From the NCBI GenBank assembly GCA_002269645.1, contig NIVC01000988.1, forward strand, positions 328,405 to 392,404: a stretch of 64,000 nucleotides of DNA, in the 5' to 3' direction. The notes beneath the pieces were generated by a model. It was given only the letters and a program-made list of their open reading frames with translations, was not told the origin of the DNA and made no database searches. Every line of letters starts with the position of its first letter. The stretch's first letter is position 1. The position numbers and the translations under genes were made by a program. Source of the stretch: Macrostomum lignano. Taxonomy: Eukaryota. Below, in pieces: positions 1,100-61,506 of this stretch.

Positions 1100-3437
1100 G
1101 AAGCGTCATGTAAAAATCATAGAAGCGTCATGTAAAAATCATAGAAGCGTCATGTAAAAAATCATAGAAGCGTCATGTAAAATTTTAGAAGCGTCATGTA
1201 AACAATCATTGAAGCGTCATGTAAAAATCATAAAAGCGTCATGTAAAAATCATAGAAGCGTCATGTAAACAATCATAGAAGCGTCATGTAAAAAATCGTA
1301 GAAGCGTCATATAAAAATCATAAAAGCGTCATGTAAAAATCATAGAAGCGTCATGTAAACAATCATTGAAGCGTCATGTAAAAATCATAGAAGCGTCATG
1401 AAAAAATAGTAGAAGCGTCATTTAAAAATCATAGAAGCGTCATGAAAAAATCATAGAAGCGTCATGCAAACAATCATAGAAGCGTCATGTAAAAATCATA
1501 GAAGCGTCATGTAAAAAATCATAGAAGCGTCATTTTAAAAAATCATAGAAGCGTCATGTAAAAAATCATAGCAGCGCCATGTAAAAATCGTAGAAGCGTC
1601 ATGTAAAAATCGTAGAAGTGTCATGTAAAAAATCATAGAAGCGTCATGTAAACAGTCATAGAAGCGTCATGTAAAAATTATAGAAGCGTCATATAAACAA
1701 TTATAGAAGCGTCATGTAAACAATCATAGAAGCGTCATGCAAACAATCATAGAAGCGTCATGTAAAAATCATAGAACCGTTATATAAACAATCATAGAAG
1801 CGTCATGCAAACAATCATAGAAGCGTCATGTAAAAATCATACAAGCGTCATGCAAACCATAATAGAAGCGTCATGTAAAAATCATAGAAGCGTCATGTAA
1901 ACAATCATAGTAGCGTCATGTAAAAATCATACAAGCGTCATGCAAACAATCATAGAAGCGTCATGTAAAAATCATAGAAGCGTCATATAAACAATTATAG
2001 ACGCGTCATGTAAACAATCATAGAAGCGTCATGCAAACAATCATTGAAGCGTCATGCAAACAATCATAGAAGCGTCATGCAAACAATCATAGAAGCGTCA
2101 TGCAAACAATCATTGAAGCGTCATGCAAACAATCATAGAAGCGTCATGCAAACAATCATAGAAGCGTCATGAAAAAATCATAGAAGCGTCATGCAAACAA
2201 TCATAGAAGCGTCATGAAAAATCATAGAAGCGTCATGCAAACAATCATAGAAGCGTCATGTAAAAATCATAGAAGCGTCATGTAAAAATCATACAAGCGT
2301 CATGCAAACCATAATAGAAGCGTCATGTAAAAATCATAGAAGCGTCATGTAAACAATCATAGTAGCGTCATGTAAAAATCATACAAGCGTCATGCAAACC
2401 ATAATAGAAGTGTCATGTAAAAATCATAGAAGCGTCATATAAACAATTATAGACGCGTCATGTAAACAATCATACAAGCGTCATGCAAACCATAATAGAA
2501 GCGTCATGTAAAAATCATAGAAGCGTCATGTAAACAATCATAGTAGCGTCATGTAAAAATCATACAAGCGTCATGCAAACCATAATAGAAGTGTCATGTA
2601 AAAATCATAGAAGCGTCATATAAACAATTATAGACGCGTCATGTAAACAATCATAGAAGCGTCATGCAAACAATCATTGAAGCGTCATGCAAACAATCAT
2701 TGAAGCGTCATGTAAAAATCATAGAAGCGTCATGTAAAAAATCATAGAAGCGTCATGTAAAAAATCATAGTAGCGTCATGTAAAAATCATACAAGCGTCA
2801 TGCAAACCATAATAGAAGCGTCATGTAAAAATCATAGAAGCGTCATATAAACAATTATAGACGCGTCATGTAAACAATCATAGAAGCGTCATGCAAACAA
2901 TCATTGAAGCGTCATGTAAAAATCATAGAAGCGTCATGTAAAAAATCATAGAAGCGTCATGTAAACAATCGTAGAAGCGTCACGCAAACAATCATTGAAG
3001 CGTCATGTAAAAATCATAGAAGCGTCATGAAAAAATAGTAGAAACGTCATTTAAAAATCATAGAAGCGTCATGTAAACAATCATAGTAGCGTCATGTAAA
3101 AATCATACAAGCGTCATGCAAACCATAATAGAAGTGTCATGTAAAAATCATAGAAGCGTCATATAAACAATTATAGACGCGTCATGTAAACAATCATAGA
3201 AGCGTCATATAAAAATCATAAAAGCGTCATGTAAAAATCATAGAAGCGTCATGTAAAAAATCATAGAAGCGTCATTTTAAAAAATCATAGAAGCGTCATG
3301 TAAAAAATCATAGAAGCGTCATGTAAAAATCGTAGAAGCCTCATATAAAAACTAATGAAAGTGTCATTTAAAAAATTAAGAAGCATAATGGAAGAATATA
3401 AGAAGCGTCATGTAAAAATCAAAAGAAGCGTCATGTC
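1100..3437 (+). repeat. 22-23 bp satellite (catagaagcgtcatgtaaa[a/c]aat), roughly 100 copies, inside unit 1
   Basis: Directly visible tandem array, with recurring variant blocks (e.g. acaagcgtcatgcaaaccataat) that indicate higher-order structure. Confidence 0.95.
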
Positions 3438-4315: not shown

Positions 4316-5556
4316 AAGGTTGACAGATTTTTTTAGATTTCAAGGCTTTTTGGGGGCATCGCTGAGATGTCAAGGGGGGAAGTTGATTTGTTAAAGCTTG
4401 TGGGGGGAATTACTGACATTTCAAGGCTTACAAGGGACTTCTGAGGTATGTTGCTAAGAGATGCTACATGTAGTTTATTACAAAATTTGTACTGCATTTT
4501 TGGCTCCCTAACGCTAAGATACTAAGCTAAAAAATACTACTAGCACTTCACAAACTTATGCAGATGTCAGGCTGTAGGGTTAGTGTTAGGGTTGGTATTA
4601 GGGTTTAGGTTTAAGGTTAGGTTCAGGGTTATTATGTTAAGATTTGGGTTAGGGTTAGGGTTAAGGAGCTTATAACTTAGCTCATGTACCTTATTAAAAA
4701 TGTTTATCATGGAAGCATCATGCAAAAATAATGGAAGCGTCATGCAAAAACAATGGAAGCGTCATGCCAAAAATCATAGAAGCATCGATCATGCAAAAAC
4801 TCATAGACAGAATATTGAATTTAGGGTTTTGGTTAGGGTTAGAAGTTTGACAGTAGATTTTTTAAGATTTCAAGGCTACATGTAGCTTATTAAAAAAACG
4901 TGTATTGCATTTCTTTGGCTCCCCAACGGGGGGCGTAGATTGCTAGTCCTATATACTAAAAATGGTCTGTCTGTGTCTATGTGATCGATTAGAGAAAAAA
5001 TGGCTGTACCGATTTTGTTCGAACTTGCACTGTTCGATCAGAAATTTTCCCGTGACTGTACATGCATCGTGGCTAAGAAATTTCTTGATGCTAAAGGCAT
5101 TAAATATTCGAAAAACATGCTTTTTTGCAAAGGTCAAGCAAACTTTTCGACTTGAAATGCATTGTAAGAATGCTAGAGAAAAAACTGACTGGTTGAATTC
5201 TGATTCTGAAATAGATTGCATCATAACTGAATTGTAACTCCGACTTGAATTGAAAATGCAGTGTGGAAGCGTAGCACCAGACTTGATTTAGATTGCGTAA
5301 CCATATTGTTAACTGATACTGACTGACTGAGAAACTGATTATGTCATAACTGCTTCGTGTGATTTACTCTATGCTTGGATTTTAAAGTGTTGAATTATAT
5401 AAGTGCAAAATTTGATGTTATCAAAACGATGAGAGCTAGCCTAGAGGTGAACAAACTGAACTGTTAAATGCAGCGACGATGGTTCGAATTTTCATAGAGT
5501 ATAATTTTTTAATTAAAGCTTTTCAACGTAAGGAAAACTAAAAGACTTTTTAAAAA

Positions 5557-6747
5557 GAATCGTCATGTAAAAATCATAGAAGCGTCATGTAAAAAATCAT
5601 AGAAGCGTCATGTAAACAATCATAGAAGCGTCATGTAAAAAATCATAGAAGCGTCATGTAAAAAATCATAGAAGCGTCATGTAAAAAATCATAGAAGCGT
5701 CATGTAAACAATCATAGAAGCGTCATGTAAACAATCATAGAAGCGTCATGTAAACAATCATAGAAGCGTCATGTAAACAATCATAGAAGCGTCATTTAAA
5801 CAATCATAGAAGCGTCATGTAAACAATCATAGAAGCGTCATGTAAAAAATCATAGAAGCGTCATGTAAACAATCATAGAAGCGCCATGTAAAAAATCATA
5901 GAAGCGTCATGTAAAAAGCATAGAAGCGTCATGTAAAAATCATAGAAGCGTCGTATAAACAATCATAGAAGCGTCATGTAAACAATCATAGAAGCGTCAT
6001 GTAAAAAATCATAGAAGCGTCATGTAAACAATCATAGAAGCGTCATGAAACAATCATAGAAGCGTCATGTAAAAAATCATAGAAGCGTCATGTAAAAAGC
6101 ATAGAAGCGTCATGTAAAAATCATAGAAGCGTCGTATAAACAATCATAGAAGCGTCATGTAAACAATCATAGAAGCGTCATGTAAACAATCATAGAAGCG
6201 TCATGTAAACAATCATAGAAGCGTCATGAAACAATCATAGAAGCGTCATGTAAACAATCATAGAAGCGTCATGTAAAAAGCATAGAAGCGTCATGTAAAA
6301 ATCATAGAAGCGTCGTATAAACAATCATAGAAGCGTCATGTAAACAATCATAGAAGCGTCATGTAAAAATCATAAAAGCGTCATGTAAAAATCATTGAAG
6401 CGTCCTGCAGAAATCGTAGAAGCGTCATGAAATAATCATAGAAGCGTCATGTAAAAAATCATAGAAGCGTCATGTAAACAATCATAGAAGCGTCATGTAA
6501 ACAATCATAGAAGCGTCATGTAAACAATCATGGAAGCGTTATGTAAAAAAATCATAGAAGCGTCATGTAAAAAGCATAGAAGCGTCATATAAACAATCAT
6601 AGAAGCGTCATATAAAAAATCATAGAAGTGTCATGTAAAAATCATAGAAGCGTCATGAAAAAATCATAGGAGCCTCATTTAAAAACTAATTAAAGTGTCA
6701 TTTAAAAAATTAAGAAGCATCATGGTAGAATAAAAGAAGCGTCATGT
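5557..6747 (+). repeat. 22-23 bp satellite, roughly 50 copies, inside unit 2
   Basis: Same monomer as 1100-3437. Confidence 0.95.
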
Positions 6748-17088: not shown

Positions 17089-44600
<27,512 letters not shown>

Positions 44601-51510: not shown

Positions 51511-54500
51511 ATGCTAAATGAATTGAACACGAAAAAACCTCTGCTGGGCAGCTGGGGTACACTTAGTTGCCTCTGGCTGCGACATGGTCTCTGTTTTTGC
51601 TTCTTTCCCTTTGTTTTTCTCCTTCCCTGCCTCTCTTTTCCCTCCTGTCACGCTTTTTTCTTTCTTATTCCCATCCTTTTTCGTCTAATTAGTTGGCCGC
51701 TTCGGCCGACTCGTCCGACTGTTGCGCATGTATGTGCGTTGTTCCGTTCCGGCACAGGAAAACAATTATCAGGGGGAATCCCCCCGTTGGTAGTTCTACT
51801 GGCAGAAAAGGTATTCCTACTGTTAATTACTACATTAGAAGAGGAAGAGCAAAATAAAGGGTAATGTTTTCCTTACAATGTTCAATTCCTTAATTCCTTA
51901 CAAAATTCATTTCAGAAGTCAGCAGGCTAGCCCTAATTCTCACTGAAAATAGATTCACTGAAGAACCCTCTGTCACCAACGTCAAAGACATTCTCACTAA
52001 TAGCGGCTTTAGGGTTGAATCGAACGTGCTGGGAAATTATGCTCAAGACATAATATCGTTCGTGCCTGATGAAATTTGTCGGTCGACAGTTCAGCAGTTG
52101 ATCATTATTGTGATCGCCAACGCTCAATATCCGAAATGCATGGATGATTTCCTGAAACTGATGACTGACGGTGGATTTTTCGACCTTCAAAAGCGCTTTC
52201 TCTTATTCTGCAGAGTTTCCAATGGTAATGAAAACACCAGCGACTTGCAGTTGCAGAAAAATTTTCTAGCAATAGTTTCAAGTACAAGAGCGCAATCGTT
52301 GGGTACAAGTTTGACGCCGAAGAGAAAATAAGAAACTTCATTAACTGGCTCGCTCAAGAAATGAACACTTGCTGGAACAATAGCTGCCTATCAGCCATGC
52401 TTAGCAGATGGTTGCCAGCTCATGATGAAGAAGATTTGTACATGTATCCAACAGGAAAATGCAAGCGACCTTTCCTACGGGACATTTTATTTCACCTTGA
52501 TAATCGAGAGCAGCAAGAAGGTAACGGCCCGATGGCAGCTGGAGCCGAGGGCCCGATGGCAGCTGCAGCCGAGAGTCCGATGAATGCGACAGTCGACAAC
52601 GACCAGATTGCTTCCCTGATTTACCCGAACAAGCGCACTCCCACCAAACCCCAAGCTCTGATCATTCTCTATTTCAACAAGAGTGCAGCGCCGTGCGAGT
52701 CTCTCCAGGCCGACTGTTTGCGGCTGATGAAATTATTCAAGTTTCGCCTTGGCTACCTCGTGACAGATATTCAAGTTGATTCAGAGAGCCAGAACGATCT
52801 TGAGGACAGAGTGAAGAGCTTCGCAAACCAACAAGATCACGGTGACTCGTGCGTCCTCATTATTTTGTCACTGTCGAACGGTCTGCTGTGTGGCCACTCC
52901 ATCATCAATCTTTTTAGCCAGATGTCGCTCAGCAAGCAGCTAAAAGGCAAACCGAGGCTGTTTCTTTTGAATGAGTGGCAGAGTGGCGCACAGACTGGCC
53001 GACTTGCTGATCCAGCCAGTCCGAGCGAAGCATTTGAAATTTTGCCAGACACTGTCAGTTCAATGGAGGACTATTGGGGCACCAGAAATGAGACATCTAA
53101 AGTTCACCCCTTTAGTGGAATGGTATTCGGCCTTGCCTCAGCAAACAATGAGACAGATGTAGATGGGAGTGATTTTGTTAGAACGCTCTGCACGACCTTT
53201 GAGAAGTTCGGTAGCACTAAAGACGTAGTGTCCATGAGTGCCATAATTAATGAAGAACTGTCAGTTTCTGCTAAAGCGTTGCCTCGCTGGATTATTCAAA
53301 CAACGAAACTTTTTTTCATCACAAATACAGGTGGACTGGAAAGTAAGTTTCCCAATCTTCTTATAACTTATTCTATTCCCTTGTACGAGCGTAGTTGAAG
53401 ATTTAGTATATTGTGATTGTGCATTATTTGGTATAATTTACATTTACATTTCATTGCCTGTGTTTCTCACAAATTTGTCTTTCTTTATTAATTTCAACCT
53501 ACAGCAACAAGTCAAAAAGTTTCACCTAATGGGCCTCAAGACAACGGTGAGAAAATTTATACTGACAGCATGAGCTACGTTCAGTTATGTACTAACTTGA
53601 AGAGTTGATATTTATAGATAACATTTGAAACTATTAAAAATTTCTAAGAAAACATTACAAATGCATTTTCAGCTTGCACCAGTGAGAGAAACAAAGCTGG
53701 TAAGTTGGAACAATCTAGAATAATTACGAGTTCTTGACATTTGAATTGTATGTGGTTCGCGACTGCATGTTGCAGAAATTTTTCCGCCTTACTTAAAGGC
53801 GCACAACTCGCTCAGCAATCACACCACACATACAGGTGACTGCATGGCGATAGGGACAAGGGGAAGGAAAGGGAGAAGGGGAAGAGGGAGAGGAGAGGGA
53901 GTTGGTGAAACAACTTGAATACTTGTTTTAGTTAGCCGAGAATTCCTAAAGGGAAAGCGATAGCGACGACAATTTATATATTTGATAAATCAATAGAAAA
54001 GGAATAAAACGTGAAAATGAAACTTTGCGTGTGTGTACAGTAATCAATGTACGCAAGGGAATAAAAGACCGCGCACGACACAGGACAACCACCCCAAACC
54101 CACGCAAGCACAAACAAGACCGCGCTAGCTCACACCACCACTGTGGGGACGGAGGAAGTGAGAGGAGAGATCAGGGAGAAATAAGGTAAGGAGGAAGGAA
54201 AAACGGGACTCGCACTACTGATCAAGACCAGTCGAGTAGGGAGCATTCCGGACCAATGTCGCCCGACCCACACTACTCGTATGACTGGCATCCAGTTCCA
54301 GAGCTGAGCAGAGTCAGCCGCCTCCTGATTAGAGGGCTTTCACAGCTGACAGGAAAGCCGGAAGGAGAAGTGGGATTGGTTGGGGAAACAATGGAGATGG
54401 GACAAGGGATCGACAACGCTCACCCAACCGCCCAGACGGTCGAAGCAATCCAAACTGCCACCACTTGTGGCGCTCCTAGTTGCCACCTTGGAACTTTAGA

Positions 54501-57283
54501 GAAACGAGTCCCCGAATTTCTACTTCCAACTTAGCCAATACAACACGCGTTCAGAGGGCTCCGTGCATTTCCGTTTTAGACTAAGTTTAGCTCAGAATGA
54601 AGTCACAATCAGATCGGGTTCACGGATCACTCGATGTTCAAGCACGAGGTCTTTGCTCAAGCCGAACTGAGAGCTACACGTATCAACAATTGATTCTGAC
54701 TAACCGACTGAGGACCCTAAAGCAGCCTGTTGTGAGGCAGATGAAGCTGATCCTCGTAAAAGCGTATTAGCTGACTCAGGAGCGAGAGCCCAAGCAGGCT
54801 GGCCGACACGCGAAGGGGAAGACGGGAAAATGAGCAATGAGCAGAAGCTCGGGTATTGAGCATTCGGGTAGCTAATAAGGGGAGATATGCAGGTCATACA
54901 GTAAAGACAACGAAGACAATATAGGAGGGAAGGCTCGAAGATAGCTGTGCACCATTTGATAAATTTCAGGCTGTGGGTCATATATCGGTTAGAACAGAGG
55001 AACATCGGTTACAGACTCTATAAACTTGCAAAACTGCAATTAGCCTACCCAAACCTACATGACTTGGGTAGAGGATCGGGAGCTACGAACGACTTCTGCT
55101 CCATCTATGAGGCTTTTCAAATAGTCGATTCTAGAACCAGAATCCGTTCTGAAATTCCAGGAAATGAAACAGTAAAATTCTCTAGCCCCTATAAACAAGA
55201 AAAGAACAGACAGTAGATAATTTGATTACATATGACAACTAACAAAATGATGGCAGAAAATCAAACACTCACGTGTAAATATCATATTGTAGCGGCAGAC
55301 GGGCCCGAAACAGACAGGGAGGCCATGCAGACAGACCGAACAGTGCATGCGTCTGCACGCTATCCCCCTGTTTGCTTTGCTGGGGTGGGCGCTCGCCCCA
55401 GACAGCTCCTGGTTTGTGACTCACGCCCCTTTGTTCGCACCTCCCCATGCTGGCTGTTCCCCTTTTACAAATAAAACAAATAAAAGCGATGCACTTCTGC
55501 TTCGTCTGGTCTAACGCTTCTTGCAGACCACTAAAATATCATATACTCCAGGAAAGAAGTATAGAAGTATAGTTTTACTACTTGGATTCACAGATATTCA
55601 GAACCGATTTGGGTCTGTAATTGGCAATTTGAAAAGCCTATTTAAACTTTTAAAAATGGGCAACGAATGAGAAATTACTGAGAAATTCTCCGACTCCAAC
55701 TGACCGTCTATCACATCACTTTGCCGTCTATTGAGTGTACTGAATCTAACGCATTGCAGCCTTCTTTGACGCTAGTAAAAAGTACTTAATACGAGTATGT
55801 TCTCTACAAAATTTCAGGTCGAACTGGTGTTGCCTTGATTTTCACAGAGTATTTATTCGATGCTGTCAGAAACTACCAAACGTTTCTTGAGTACGCAAGC
55901 TTTAAAGTACACGTGGACCGCACACGTGGTGACATGAAATCGTTAAGAAAAGCGTTCGATCGTGAGAAAGACCATTTTCAAAAAGACCTCGTAGTTATTG
56001 TTGTCGTGCGCCACCGTCATAGCGATGGGGATCTGTTGCGAATAATCGGCGATATTGGTATCACGAGATCGACAGAAGCTCGCCACAGCACACTGCTTAT
56101 CCATTGCGAGGTCCATGACACCGAAGAATCTTCTCAGAGGGAGTTACAGGTAGCCCGGCAAGTAGAAAACTTGCCTGACAAGTTCAGCATGGCCTGTTTC
56201 TTTGGCAATGAAGAGGAAGTCAAAGAATTTCTTGACTCATTGCTCCAAGATGCGAGGATGTCAGAAAGCCTGAATGGAATTTCCGTTGTTGGCAGAAATT
56301 TTCAAGACGGGCGCACCTCTCAAAGAAACTTCGTGTTCAAGCGTAATGATGAAATCCCAAAATGGGCAACGGGAAGAGTGATTAAATGGCTAGGCAACTA
56401 TACTATCAAATCAAGTGTTCAACGATCTACTACTGCGCAGGACGACACCGTTCAGTCAGAAGTTGTAGTTGATGAGTTCCGACTGTCCGAAACGCGGAAG
56501 AGATGGCACCCAAAGCTCCCCCCAGCAATCGAATCCACTTCAGAATGTGTCAGAGCACCCAGAGCACTCATCGTGCACAATGTTATCTTCAAAGAGAAAC
56601 TAAGCGCTAGGCTCGGTAGCCAGCATGACTGTCAAAGGCTGACAGAGAGTCTCCTAAGACTCGGCTACAAGGTCTCGATCAGGTCGAATCTCAACGGAGC
56701 TGAAATTAAACACGAAGTTAAGAAGTTTTCCGAAGAGTCTGACGACGGCAGGTCATCTGTCGTTGCGTTTATGTCTCACGGACGCCTCGGCGAAGTCTTC
56801 GGCTCTGATGAAGAGCCTGTAGGAGAAAAAGATGTATTACAACTTTTCTCAGATGAATCAGGGACAAAAGACAACTTTCAGCTAGCCATATTTCAGTGCT
56901 GTCGTGTTCCAGGTCAATTACCAGACGAGGTGTCGTGTCTGGCCTTCTACCCGGGTATGATAATCGCTCACTCTACCCTGCCAAATGACTTCAGTCTGCG
57001 TGTGAAGAGCAAGGGCAGCCGGTTCATCCAGAGCTTCTGCACAGTGCTGGATCTTTTTCCTCACAATGACATTGTAACGATCATTCCTCTGGTGAATTAC
57101 TTAATGCTCAACTCGATTTATCAAGGATTCAGTCAGCAGCCTTGGTGGTTTGTTCAAAGCGGAAAAAGGTTCTGGCCCAAAGTTCAAGGTGCTGGTGAAA
57201 ATTCACAAAATCCGTCAGAATGCAACAATGCTTTTGACTTACAGGAGTTACAAAAAATTATCGAATCAGATCACCAGGATTAG
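51511..57283 (+). CDS. Multi-caspase-fold protein gene 1: degenerate module A1, pseudo-caspase B1, microexon linker, module A2, active-type caspase C1
   Basis: Predicted exons 51511-51556 (tentative), 51916-53342 (one frameshift at the A run 52257-52261), 53505-53546, 53673-53699 and 55818-57283; all introns phase 1 and in frame. C1 has FMSHG (His 56777) and FQCCRV (Cys 56900). B1 has ILSL and LLNEW in place of SHG and QAC. Confidence 0.75.
52361..53342 (+). CDS. Caspase-like (peptidase C14 fold) pseudo-protease segment B1 of gene 1
   Basis: PQALII..DCLRLMKLFKFRLGY..FANQQDHGDSCVLIILS..LKGKPRLF..DGSDFVRTLC; donor GAA A|gtaagt. The ORF reads through to a stop at 53398 if unspliced. Confidence 0.88.
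55277..55544. mobile_element. Possible solo-LTR-like or other short insertion (246 bp) in a gene 1 intron
   Basis: Starts TGTAGCGG (55288), contains two AATAAA, and is flanked by the 11 bp direct repeat aaatatcatat (55277-55287, 55534-55544). No clean CA end. Confidence 0.4.
55818..57283 (+). CDS. Terminal exon of gene 1: module A2 + caspase C1 with intact catalytic dyad
   Basis: PRALIVHN..ARLGSQHD..LGYKV..VVAFMSHG..IFQCCR..MIIAHST..SLR..GSRFIQSFC. Confidence 0.93.
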
Positions 57284-58986
57284 CCTGCAGTTGAGGATCG
57301 TGGAGCAGCCCCTGTTCCAGGTCATTGATACCCTGTGTGGATCATCGGGCAGAGCATGATGATCTTAATGCGGTTGCTTCACTAACTTCTAATGGGATTC
57401 GTCTGACTGATGACGCTCCTGATGCTCCATATAATTCTAAAAGTTGTGCTGGAGTGGACAGCCCTATCCAACTGCGTTGAGTATAATTAATTAATTAACG
57501 TTGATTAATGCGCAAAAGTAAGAGTAAATTTATTTATACTATAATATAGCACGTTTTTTAATAATTCTCACCCATTGTTAATTGTTGTAATCCAATTATA
57601 GGTAAATGTAATACAAATCAGAAATTCTCCATAAAGTACACTGGCAGATCTAATGAGGGATCGAAGCTACTCCGTACGTTGCTTGGTCCACTACACCCCA
57701 AGCACAGCAGCACCTGGTACATTAAATAGACTATTGTATTTCAAATATTCCCATTCCTACGGACATATATTTCTTGCCATGGCTTGCCCCTCTCGGTTGT
57801 TCTGCGAACGCGTCCGCGCAAAGTCTAGCTAGATCTCTTTTTGTCTGTGCTTTTGTCTGCGTCGCTATATATATATGCTCCATATAATTCCATATAATTA
57901 ATTCCATATAATATATGGCTGAGACTCAGACACCGGGTCCTTGGTCGGTTTAGGGGCAGGCATAGAAACCGTCCAGCCAAACCGTCTAGCTAGAGCACAT
58001 AAAATTGAAATTGAAATAAAAAATGATTGCAATTGAATAGCCGCGTGTAAGCCGAAAACACAAAAGGGACAAAATGTGTTTATTGAATCCTTGTTTTCTA
58101 TTCGCACAATATCTTTCACAACGCTCGACGATTTGCTTCTACTTCTTTACACATTTATCGTTTAGTTCGTGTGGTTGATAAAAATACTGTACATATTTTA
58201 TTATTTATACCGGAAATTTTCAACACATTTTTCTTGAACTAATTTTTAATTTGTATTTAAATCCTTTATACCAAATTTAAGCTCAGATCGCGTCATAAAC
58301 TTAGCTAAAAACAATTGTTTAAAATAATTTTCACATTCTTGCTATTTGAGAATTAATCTGACGTCAACTACTTGAACTAATAACGTTCCGCAACTATTGC
58401 GATGACTTTTTAATAGAAAGTTTTTACTGCTCAATGTATGAAGCTTAACGTATTTAGTTAATAATTATTAGTACTATTTTTTTCAGCCAGCTATCATTAA
58501 CAATCCTCGGCTAGCTCTTGATTATGAGCAATTTACGGTTAATTATTTGTGAAGTTCCACTGTCCTGCTGTTTCTGTCGCTTAACAGTTTTTTTCTAACA
58601 ATACAGCAAAAAATGCTTCATCATTCACCTCAAACCGTTTCAATTGACTTTCATTTTCTACGAGCAGAAACGTGTTAAATAGAAACTAAATTTAGATAGA
58701 GATTTAGGTATATTGATTTAGCTGTTTCAAAATGCTAAGACAGTTCGAAGTCAAAAGATAAATCGAGAGCACACAAATCAACAGTTTTCTAAAATAAAAA
58801 TCACTCGTAAAATCACTTTATGCACTGTCAGGTAGTTCAGGCAAGTGTTTTGTACTCGTACTGCAAACAGCTAAATTTCATAACAATTTGCTACCGAATT
58901 TATGCCCCTTTTCAGCGAGAATTTTTCAAAGGCAACTTGAGAGATTTAAAACAAATAAAAACATCCGTTGATTTCTATCAGAAAAC

Positions 58987-61506
58987 ATGACGAAAGACGC
59001 TTCAACTTTTATTGGTAAGGGGTTCGCTTTCTTCATAAATTTTCTATAGCTGACGAAAGATCTATAAAATACGTATACTTGAATAAACGTTTAAGCCGAA
59101 ACTTTTAGAACGATCGTATGGCAACCGCCCAAAACGAGACAATTTTTTTAATTTTTACCCTTTCAGATCATCGCCGACTGCTGCTGGTCTTCGCTGATGA
59201 ACACAAAGACATGCTGATAAATTATACCGAGTTTATGGAGAGTAAATGCGGATTTTTTAGGAAGACATTTCCCCTCGCAAACATTTCTGACGGCTTTGCT
59301 GAACTCGACAGCGGTCCAGTCATTCAAGTTGTCTGCGCCGTCGTCTGCTCGGAGACATCCGCATGCAACATGGAAGACTTCCTGAAGCCTCTTATTGCTC
59401 GGTTTGGGAAAGATGTCGATCAGCTGCTGCTGTACTGCAGAGTCTGTGATGGCAACCCAAATGAGAAGGATGAAGAATTAAAAAGTAAATTCAACGCCAG
59501 TGGATTCGAATACAAAAATTCGACAATTTCTTACATTGCTGACAGTTCTGACAATATTAGAAAGTTCCTAAGTGACAGCCTAATCAAACAGAAGACCAAG
59601 CAATGGAATGCCGAAACTTGTGCAGCTGATGTTCTTTACAACATTGAGGGTTTTGAAAAATTGTGCGTACAAAAGACAAAGAATTTTTTGCGACACATCA
59701 CGGAACCACATACGTCTGGGCAATCTGGCGCCATTTCATTCGCTGAGCCGTTTACCAATCATATCAACACACAGATCTCCGACAATTCGTTGATTTATCC
59801 TAATAGTCGTGAAACTTTTCCGAAGGCTCTTATCATTTTAAACATCTACCCAGAAAATAATATCAGCAAAGCAATGCTCACGGACTGGAAGCGTCTGCTG
59901 TGGCTGTTCGACAAACTGCAGTTCAAAGTCACAGATGTGCAAACCGACGCCAGTACTGAGAACGCAGCAGAAACCAGTGTGAAGAATTTTGCAAACTCTG
60001 AATACCATGGAGATTCGTGCGTCTTAGTGATTCTGTCTGAGCGCAAGCTCAGCCAAAACTTTATTCGCAAAACCAGCGACTCTATGGCAGCTGGCGAAAA
60101 CTCCAGGACAAGCCCAGACTGATCATCCTGCAGCACTGGGAGACCAAACCGCCAAGTGCCGATGGCGCGCCCGCTGGACTTTCCCAGTTCGTGCCGGCTA
60201 TTGTTGACTCAATCCGGACCCGCCGCAAACACACAAGCCTGAAGTGCGAGTTCATCCGCATGGCGGAATGATTTGGTGCCAGCCGGCTGCTGCAGACTCC
60301 GACACTGATGACGGCAGCTCACTAGTTTGGGTGATCTGCGACACCTTCATCAAATATTCAGCCACTGAGGACGTGGTGTCAATGATTTCGCTGATCAATG
60401 AGAAGCTGAAGGCCTCGCCTCCACTGTGGTGTGTGCAGACTACCAAGTATTTCTTCATCACAGACACCAGTCGTCCATTGAATAACTCACGTGAGTACCT
60501 TTTTTGAGCTTATTCAAATTATACCTCGTATTTTAATATTCCATAACTTATCTTTCGACTGTGAAATCGTTTTGTCGAATTGTGCAGTTGCTCTGTGATT
60601 CGGAATTACGTGCATTATTACTAACCAGAACAGGTAGAAAAGAGCAAATGTATTCGTAATTACGTTAAATCAGCCAGCACAAAAAGGTAGCACAATAAGC
60701 TAATGAGGGTCAGTCGATGGAAAATCTTAAACACTATTTCAGTCTAAAAGCTGCCTCATTCCATCGATAAAATGTCTCTTAAAAAACCTTTTTTCAGTCG
60801 AGCCACCTTCCACTAAAGAAAGCGCAAAAGCGGGTCTCGCCTTAATAATTAATAACACATTTAAGAACGACTCCAAATTTGTAAGAGAAGGAAGCGACAT
60901 CGATCGTGAAAAATTGAAAAGTACTTTCAAAAAGTTTGGTTACGACACTAAAATTGCGGAGGATCTCAGTGCAGAGAAAGTTCGATCTGAAGTGAAACAA
61001 TTTGCCGATGATAGCCGTCACGGTGACACCTGCATTGTGGTCATCATGTCCCACGGAAAACTGGGAAAAATCATTGGAGTCGATCACTCGGAAGCGTCGG
61101 AAACGAAAATTCTTAAAATACTGAACGATAGCAAAAGCCTTTCAGGAAAGAAAAAACTCGTCATATTTCAGCTATGCCGAGATCACCCAGATGGAAGCCC
61201 ATCGAGCAATTCTGACCATCCCACTCGACTGGTCTACCCGGACATGATCGTGGCGCACTCGACAAGCATAGGTGAAAAAAGCTTTCGCAGCACAGATCAA
61301 GGCAGCCGGTTTGTGAATAGCCTGTGCGATGCTCTTGACAAGTTCGGGAAAGGCTCAGACATCGTCTCGCTCATCAGTGCCATCAACTGCATTATGATGA
61401 GAAGTTTTTACGATAAACTAGTACAATTAAAGATGACACCCAGCTGCCCTTCTGGCTGGTGCAGACCACGGGCCCTTTTGTTCTCGCCAATCTTACGGAT
61501 GGCTGA
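58987..61506 (+). CDS. Multi-caspase-fold protein gene 2: module A3, pseudo-caspase B2, active-type caspase C2 (three apparent frameshifts)
   Basis: Exons 58987-59014 (MTKDASTFI G|gtaagg), 59167-60490 and 60798-61506; both introns phase 1. B2 has HGDSCVLVILSE and KPRLIILQHW. C2 has VREGSDID, VIMSHG (His 61052), IFQLCRD (Cys 61175) and GSRFVNSLC. Frameshifts near 60055-60072, 60227-60229 and 61413-61415. Confidence 0.78.
60798..61506 (+). CDS. Caspase catalytic domain exon (C2) of gene 2
   Basis: GLALIINNTF..REGSDIDREKLKSTFKKFGY..CIVVIMSHG..KKLVIFQLCR..DMIVAHSTSIGEKSFR..QGSRF. The C-terminal LPFWLVQTT strand is in the shifted frame. Confidence 0.92.

Follow-up and report, generated by a model that had tools for sequence, protein, structure and literature searches.

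A reduced and probably non-catalytic caspase-like module repeated in tandem caspase genes of Macrostomum lignano

Can a protein domain that escapes the standard domain models be derived from a caspase, and if so, what might it still do? This question is raised by a 64,000-nucleotide (nt) stretch of the genome of the free-living flatworm Macrostomum lignano (assembly GCA_002269645.1, contig NIVC01000988.1, positions 328,405 to 392,404 of the forward strand; here, the window), which is eukaryotic in character with sparse open reading frames (ORFs), short GT-AG introns and many minisatellites. Mapping of protein models and splice sites placed two tandem caspase genes on its + strand. Gene 1 encodes, in order, a module A1, a dead caspase domain B1, a module A2 and an active caspase domain C1, while gene 2 encodes A3, a dead caspase B3 and an active caspase C3; the 482-residue (aa) ORF at 55835-57283 is part of the M. 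lignano protein BOX15_Mlig007987g1 (P0001, 838 aa), with 100% identity. From the letters of the DNA, an earlier reading (the original prediction) had proposed that A1, A2 and A3 are copies of one compact, highly divergent caspase-like domain which always keeps its Cys and may be a sensor, a dimerisation module or a cryptic protease of new specificity. We report here that module A is probably a degenerate and trimmed caspase (peptidase C14) domain that arose by internal duplication and is non-catalytic.

All three segments were found on the + strand with the motifs and at the places originally listed: LALIL, GFRV, IIIVIA, LLFCRV and IRNFI in A1; ALIF, SFKV, VVIVVVRHRH, LLIHCEV and VKEFL in A2; LLLVF, GFFR, VVCAVV, LLLYCRV and IRKFL in A3. 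The Cys codons (52209-52211, 56105-56107 and 59436-59438, respectively) start exactly where they had been placed, and the His codons said to end the third strand of A2 are present at 56012-56014 and 56018-56020. Pairwise, A1 matched A3 with a BLASTP E value of 1e-7, A2 matched A3 at only E 0.028, and the comparison of A2 with A1 gave no significant similarity. Eight distinct lineages of module A were compared in this study, five of type 1 (A1/A3-type) and three of type 2 (A2-type, also denoted A'), and the profiles of these two subtypes matched each other in hhalign with P 2.4e-10 and a probability of 96.8% over 148 columns. Given the BLASTP match of A1 with A3 and the profile-profile match of the two subtypes, A1, A2 and A3 are homologous to one another, and the proposed threefold repeat, which is coding, is borne out. 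A hidden Markov model (HMM) of the module recovered exactly three copies across the window. Modules of type 1 exceed ~160 aa and come to ~190-200 aa when further conserved helices and a putative final strand are counted.

A full-size caspase-like domain directly follows every module A, and the two share an exon at all three window copies. These neighbouring B and C domains are readily assigned to Pfam PF00656 (E 1e-10 to 1e-30). The active-site motifs are MSHG and FQCCR in C1 and MSHG and FQLCRD in C3; the B1 and B3 domains have SLSNG or SERK at the SHG site (SLSNG in B1) and NEWQS or QHWET at the QACRG site (LNEWQ in B1). An A' module between B3 and C3 was searched for with the module HMM and by splice sites and none was found, the 300-nt interval being an intron with GT/AG ends.

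Relatives of these genes were found within M. lignano. The proteins P0008 (1017 aa), P0006 (691 aa) and P0010 (580 aa) have the domain orders A-B-A'-C, A-B-C and A-C, respectively, and a two-gene tandem of the same kind lies on a paralogous contig (L001, NIVC01000896.1; 7249-10957 and 13653-16877), where each gene is A-B-A'-C. P0008 is the counterpart of window gene 2 on that contig and keeps A', with Phe at the site of the conserved Cys. Family entries are already public as uncharacterised proteins named "Caspase family p20 domain-containing". When 1.84 billion representative proteins were searched exhaustively with the HMM, only six matched, all from M. lignano, which left no further sequences for a deeper alignment; in word-indexed homologue searches, the module profile retrieved one protein and the P0010 N-terminus none.

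The relationship of module A to caspases was examined by profile alignment, by a search of PDB sequences and by predicted structure, with the module A side kept free of caspase sequences in all three. In local hhalign alignment, the eight A modules matched five active caspase domains of the family with a score of 39.7 (P 3.2e-5) over 98 columns spanning beta1-beta4, compared with 20.4 for the reversed template and a mean of 14.8 (standard deviation 2.3, maximum 20.2) for 60 block-shuffles. Global alignment of the same profiles scored 38.0 (P 4e-7) over 197 columns, with shuffles at a mean of 4.75 and a maximum of 17.9. The order of the elements is collinear and the module A Cys falls onto the catalytic Cys. 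The motif equivalences that had been drawn with caspases are reproduced by this alignment (ALIx with ALIv, GF.V with GY.V, LLxxC with ifQxC and I/V-R/K-x-F-I/L with GSrFI), in which the third strand of module A corresponds to the strand preceding SHG, as had also been suggested. With small alignments, an early comparison had fallen short of significance (E 0.084), and the signal rose with added modules. In the same manner, a five-module profile searched against PDB sequences gave chance-level matches only (SAC3, MJ0577); with the eight-module HMM, four of the ten best matches among all PDB sequences were insect caspases in the correct register, all of them sub-threshold (Spodoptera caspase-1, E 0.024 and 0.06; drICE, E 0.4-0.55).

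The caspase/haemoglobinase fold (clan CD) is an alpha/beta/alpha sandwich of six strands in the order 2-1-3-4-5-6, the last being antiparallel, and consists of a flavodoxin-like core with an antiparallel sixth strand. Since the caspase fold contains such a core, the mixture of caspase and flavodoxin-like matches described here is expected. Structures were predicted with AlphaFold2 from alignments of A modules only. The A3 model had a predicted local distance difference test score (pLDDT) of 74, with core blocks mostly at 86-93, and a predicted template modelling score (pTM) of 0.75; the A2 model had a pLDDT of 67 and a pTM of 0.69. In both, the predicted elements follow the order beta-alpha-beta-alpha-beta-alpha-beta-alpha-beta-alpha-alpha-(beta), as in a caspase. 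When the A2 model was compared with the PDB using Foldseek, the highest-ranking match was c-FLIP(L) (3h13; E 2e-4, TM-scores 0.51/0.49), and the five best were all of the caspase fold, the others being 3h11_A, drICE and two CED-3 chains. For the A3 model, the highest TM-scores were those of procaspase-3 (4jqz_B; 0.50/0.58), a caspase-6 zymogen and caspase-3. The core that is kept comprises beta1-alpha1-beta2-alpha2-beta3-alpha3-beta4, beta5-alpha4-alpha5 and possibly beta6, usually with a Cys at the end of beta4. The profile alignment, the predicted order of the elements and the best Foldseek matches together support the minimal caspase-fold domain of the original prediction, and on such alignments and models we hold a caspase-derived fold to be likely. 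A TIR or flavodoxin-like fold, the outcome which the original prediction had set against its own proposal, was not found for A2; the result for A3 is ambiguous.

A number of observations weigh against this reading of module A. A Pfam scan of the eight modules, at E values up to 10, gave no PF00656 match and no other match of relevance. The hhalign probabilities of the caspase alignment were only 73-87%, each subtype profile was weak against the caspase domains when used by itself (P 0.008 and 0.16), and the comparison of module A with the neighbouring pseudo-caspase B was not significant (P 0.04). The first-ranking PDB sequence match of the module HMM was a designed Rossmann 2x3 protein (E 0.0013), and a part of the signal is hence generic alpha/beta periodicity. 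In the predicted structures, the sixth strand, which discriminates a caspase from a flavodoxin-like fold, is of low confidence (pLDDT ~50-70), and the TM-scores to caspases, at about 0.5, are moderate. No Foldseek match of the A3 model reached E 1e-3; its lowest E values (3e-3 to 1e-2) belonged to flavodiiron flavodoxin domains and an RpiR SIS domain. In addition, a purely structural role does not account for the near-invariant Cys, and the function as a cis partner discussed below is drawn from analogy.

Some of these points would fit an unrelated Rossmann- or flavodoxin-like domain (CheY-, TIR- or SIS-like) that became fused to caspases and resembles them through the shared parallel 2-1-3-4-5 core. 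The A3 matches and the designed Rossmann protein speak for such an origin, as do a TIR domain at rank 31 for the A2 model and the failure of Pfam to recognise the module. The flavodoxin and SIS matches of A3 are, however, non-significant and have lower TM-scores (0.26-0.39) than caspases (0.45-0.58), and the five best matches of the A2 model all share the caspase fold. No natural flavodoxin, CheY or TIR is among the ten best PDB sequence matches in which the four caspases appear, and the full-length collinear alignment to caspases, Cys on Cys, lies far above the shuffles. Although the flavodoxin/CheY fold is likewise a three-layer alpha/beta/alpha arrangement with parallel strands and gave weak Foldseek matches, only one helix follows its beta5, whereas in module A, as in caspases, beta5 is predicted to be followed by two helices and, in module A, a possible strand. 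Internal duplication is also the economical source of such a domain in a protein that already has two caspase domains. We therefore regard an unrelated origin as unlikely.

If module A is caspase-derived, its catalytic features argue strongly that it is non-catalytic. The Cys is among the best conserved positions and is kept in seven of the eight module lineages; the claim that it is always kept thus holds for the three window copies and fails for the family, the A' of P0008 having Phe as confirmed in the genomic DNA. Around this Cys, none of the Gln, Ala and Gly of QACxG remains: Phe, Tyr or His occupies the place of the preceding Gln, and the following Gly is missing. Copies of type 1 have an Arg directly after the Cys, as in QACRG. 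In both the A3 and A2 models, the Cys lies inside beta4 and not on the loop that follows. No His was found at the end of beta3 in the type 1 modules (A1, A3 and relatives), where A1 has IANAQ and A3 has CSETS. The A2-type copies have RHRH, RTHR and KKHQ at this place, with a His within four residues of the strand end that shifts in register and lacks the following Gly. The deletions relative to caspases also fall on functional loops: 11-12 residues are missing after beta1, where the loop bearing the S1 Arg would be, ~10 after the SHG position (a hairpin) and ~7 in the loop before the GSxFI helix, which is the loop of the second S1 Arg.

A cryptic Cys protease, or another Cys-dependent enzyme of new specificity, could appeal to the conservation of the Cys in alignment with the nucleophile, the Arg behind it in type 1 and the His near the end of beta3 in A2-type copies. 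As the type 1 modules have no such His, that of the A2-type is not fixed in position, one Cys has become Phe, the S1-pocket loops have been deleted or replaced and the Cys lies within a strand in both models, we consider the cryptic protease of the original prediction highly improbable.

As a measure of constraint, we used identity per module and not dN/dS, since the paralogues are 33-50% identical with saturated synonymous sites and the closest copies hardly differ from one another. Between old paralogues, identity is 33-34% for A and 36-42% for A', compared with 38-51% for B and C; module A has diverged somewhat faster than B and C, if within a similar range, and has retained its hydrophobic pattern. 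Such rates and such a pattern argue for a folded domain under constraint.

Four single-base frame breaks affect the window copies. Compared with P0004 (98% identical), A1 lacks one nucleotide near 52255, as a result of which its distal part (FKYKSAIVGY, IRNFINWL and FLRDILF) lies in the next frame; compared with the 96%-identical P0006, B3 has 1-nt deletions near 60100 (60097-60101) and near 60236, and C3 has one near 61412. These breaks may be assembly errors or true decay of these copies. That module A is merely a decaying and non-functional remnant (a pseudogene or linker) with no folded role, as the frame breaks and the omission of A1 from the NCBI model P0001 might suggest, is very hard to maintain when the reading frames of A2 and A3 run uninterrupted into their downstream domains, every module type has intact copies at other M. 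lignano loci and in other models, the old paralogues have kept their hydrophobic periodicity at identities near those of B and C, the A3 core is predicted with good confidence from only eight sequences, and all four breaks are single-base events, two of them in A-runs, a pattern suggestive of long-read assembly error.

How the arrangement of a degenerate and trimmed caspase domain beside full-size ones came about can be proposed from the gene structure. As module A shares an exon with the full-size domain that follows it, the ancestral unit looks like a module A joined to a caspase domain. This unit would have been duplicated inside the gene to give A-B-A'-C, after which the first full-size domain would have decayed into the pseudo-caspase B; window gene 2 would later have lost its A'. 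In the longest members of the family, a single chain most likely comprises as many as four domains of the caspase fold. Module A itself would cut nothing and would serve as a built-in folded partner or prodomain, and it may pack against, or regulate, the neighbouring caspase-like domain of the same chain, by analogy with c-FLIP(L), caspase-X and caspase-16. Among the functions proposed for module A, we tentatively prefer such a role in cis, by dimerisation or regulation, although it is on balance less likely than not.

Caspase activation normally requires dimerisation on adaptor platforms and is tuned by pseudo-caspases such as c-FLIP(L), in which the catalytic Cys has been lost. Like c-FLIP(L) (3h13, 3h11), which partners an active caspase, module A would be a non-catalytic caspase fold. 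However, c-FLIP(L) acts on caspase-8 in trans, as a separate polypeptide with death effector domain (DED) prodomains, while module A lies in cis; c-FLIP(L) has caspase loops of full length and is detectable by Pfam, while module A is ~60-80 residues shorter, invisible to Pfam and, unlike c-FLIP(L), mostly retains its Cys.

Closer parallels come from single-chain proteins. Caspase-X of the coral Acropora has an N-terminal inactive and a C-terminal active caspase domain in one chain, and cell killing increased when the inactive domain was removed, showing that this domain dampens activity and is regulatory in cis (PMC4715348). The chain resembles the flatworm B and C domains and, on the reading proposed here, A and C. 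Its inactive domain is a recognisable Peptidase_C14 that lacks the His and the Cys; the flatworm proteins, unlike caspase-X, have two grades of pseudo-domain (B recognisable, A not) that alternate as A-B-A'-C. Module A was found only in M. lignano, and its origin is independent of that of caspase-X. The prodomain of mammalian caspase-16 arose by duplication of caspase-domain exons with loss of the N-terminal catalytic site, and an intramolecular pseudo-dimer has been proposed (PMC12198278); this is a single duplicated domain, visible by sequence and limited to vertebrates, without the loop deletions of module A. Four caspases with two CASc domains have been described in Mytilus coruscus (PMC10967218). 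The bivalve caspases are similar in being a lophotrochozoan family expanded by tandem duplication, with duplicated domains and, in some, a degenerate QACxG; their domains are seen by standard models, and a minimal module that escapes detection has not been reported from them. In a survey of lophotrochozoan caspases, a kinase-prodomain caspase is the sole M. lignano oddity mentioned (PMC11463336). Single-chain proteins that combine pseudo- and active caspase domains are thus already known from corals, bivalves and mammals (caspase-16). As far as we found in the literature, three features are new: there is a second grade of caspase-fold domain, far more reduced and missed by Pfam; this domain is strictly paired with one of full size; and the resulting proteins have up to four domains of this fold.

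A bolder reading would take the A-B-A'-C proteins as single-chain caspase assemblies, in which A with B and A' with C pair in cis and mimic a dimer or tetramer, and in which the Cys is a redox or covalent switch and not a nucleophile. We think this improbable; if true, it would provide control of activation independent of adaptors in a flatworm lineage reported to be without FADD (PMC11463336), and module A would represent a new minimal class of caspase-fold pseudo-enzyme. With module A taken, as we prefer, for a trimmed caspase domain, the family would be a natural experiment on how much of the caspase fold can be removed from a domain that is still retained, and on the cis control of proteases by pseudo-enzymes. 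Reduction has put two of the four domains beyond the reach of standard domain models, and the domain counts of invertebrate caspase surveys can miss such modules. The practical reach is modest; the family was found only in M. lignano, and its function is putative.

The coordinates of the exons and domains are collected in Table 1.

Table 1. Exons and domains of the two tandem caspase genes (window positions)
Feature	Position	Strand	Remarks
Gene 1 exon, A1 and B1	51916-53342	+	Acceptor tttcag before; GT donor 53343 after
Gene 1 mini-exons, B1-to-A2 linker	~53505-53545, ~53672-53700	+	TTSQKVSPNGPQDN / ACTSERNKAG in gene model P0001
Gene 1 exon, A2 and C1	from 55818, stop at 57283	+	Acceptor tttcag precedes
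Gene 2 exon, A3 and B3	59118 to ~60490	+	GT donor ~60491
Gene 2 exon, C3	from 60797	+	Separated by an intron from the A3 and B3 exon
Module A1 (type 1)	51916..52495	+	HMM E 8e-44 and 3e-31 (two frame pieces)
B1, full-size pseudo-caspase, in A1 exon	52613..53342	+	Pfam PF00656 E 1.2e-10
Module A2 (type 2, = A')	55818..56405	+	HMM E 4e-65
C1, active-type caspase, same exon and ORF as A2	56552..57283	+	Pfam PF00656 E 1e-30
Module A3 (type 1), intact	59118..59702	+	HMM E 8e-70
B3, pseudo-caspase, in A3 exon	59787..60490	+	Two 1-nt deletions relative to P0006
C3, active-type caspase	60797..61503	+	Pfam PF00656 E 5.9e-29

Within gene 1, the mini-exon at 53505-53549 reads TTSQKVSPNGPQDN in the frame of P0001 and QQVKKFHLMGLKTTV in the frame of P0004; as the two frames differ, at least one of the models of the B1-to-A2 junction is wrong. 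In the linkers that join module A to the domain behind it, there are tetrapeptides with a final Asp, namely LDEVD|A in P0002/P0007, VDND in gene 1 and QISD in gene 2, the latter two at ~52560-52600 and 59740-59790 of the window. From their sequence, these Asp motifs, whose frequency is no higher than that expected by chance from the Asp content, could be caspase self-cleavage sites that free module A.

Elsewhere in the window, exons of a TRPC-type cation channel were found on the + strand at 17100-17741 and 20593-21228 (ankyrin repeats, E 1e-6; TRP_2, E 1e-29), in a region of ~15-44 kb that is dense in minisatellites. Tandem arrays occupy 1100-3436, 5556-6747, 25104-28815, 30529-31519 and 42769-44094, and the array types are a 23-nt satellite (~100 and ~50 copies), a 238-nt/68-nt composite of 3.7 kb, (ACAG)n of ~1 kb and (TAGT)n of ~1.3 kb. 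These large arrays account for the extreme composition skews and the long repetitive pseudo-ORFs of the window.

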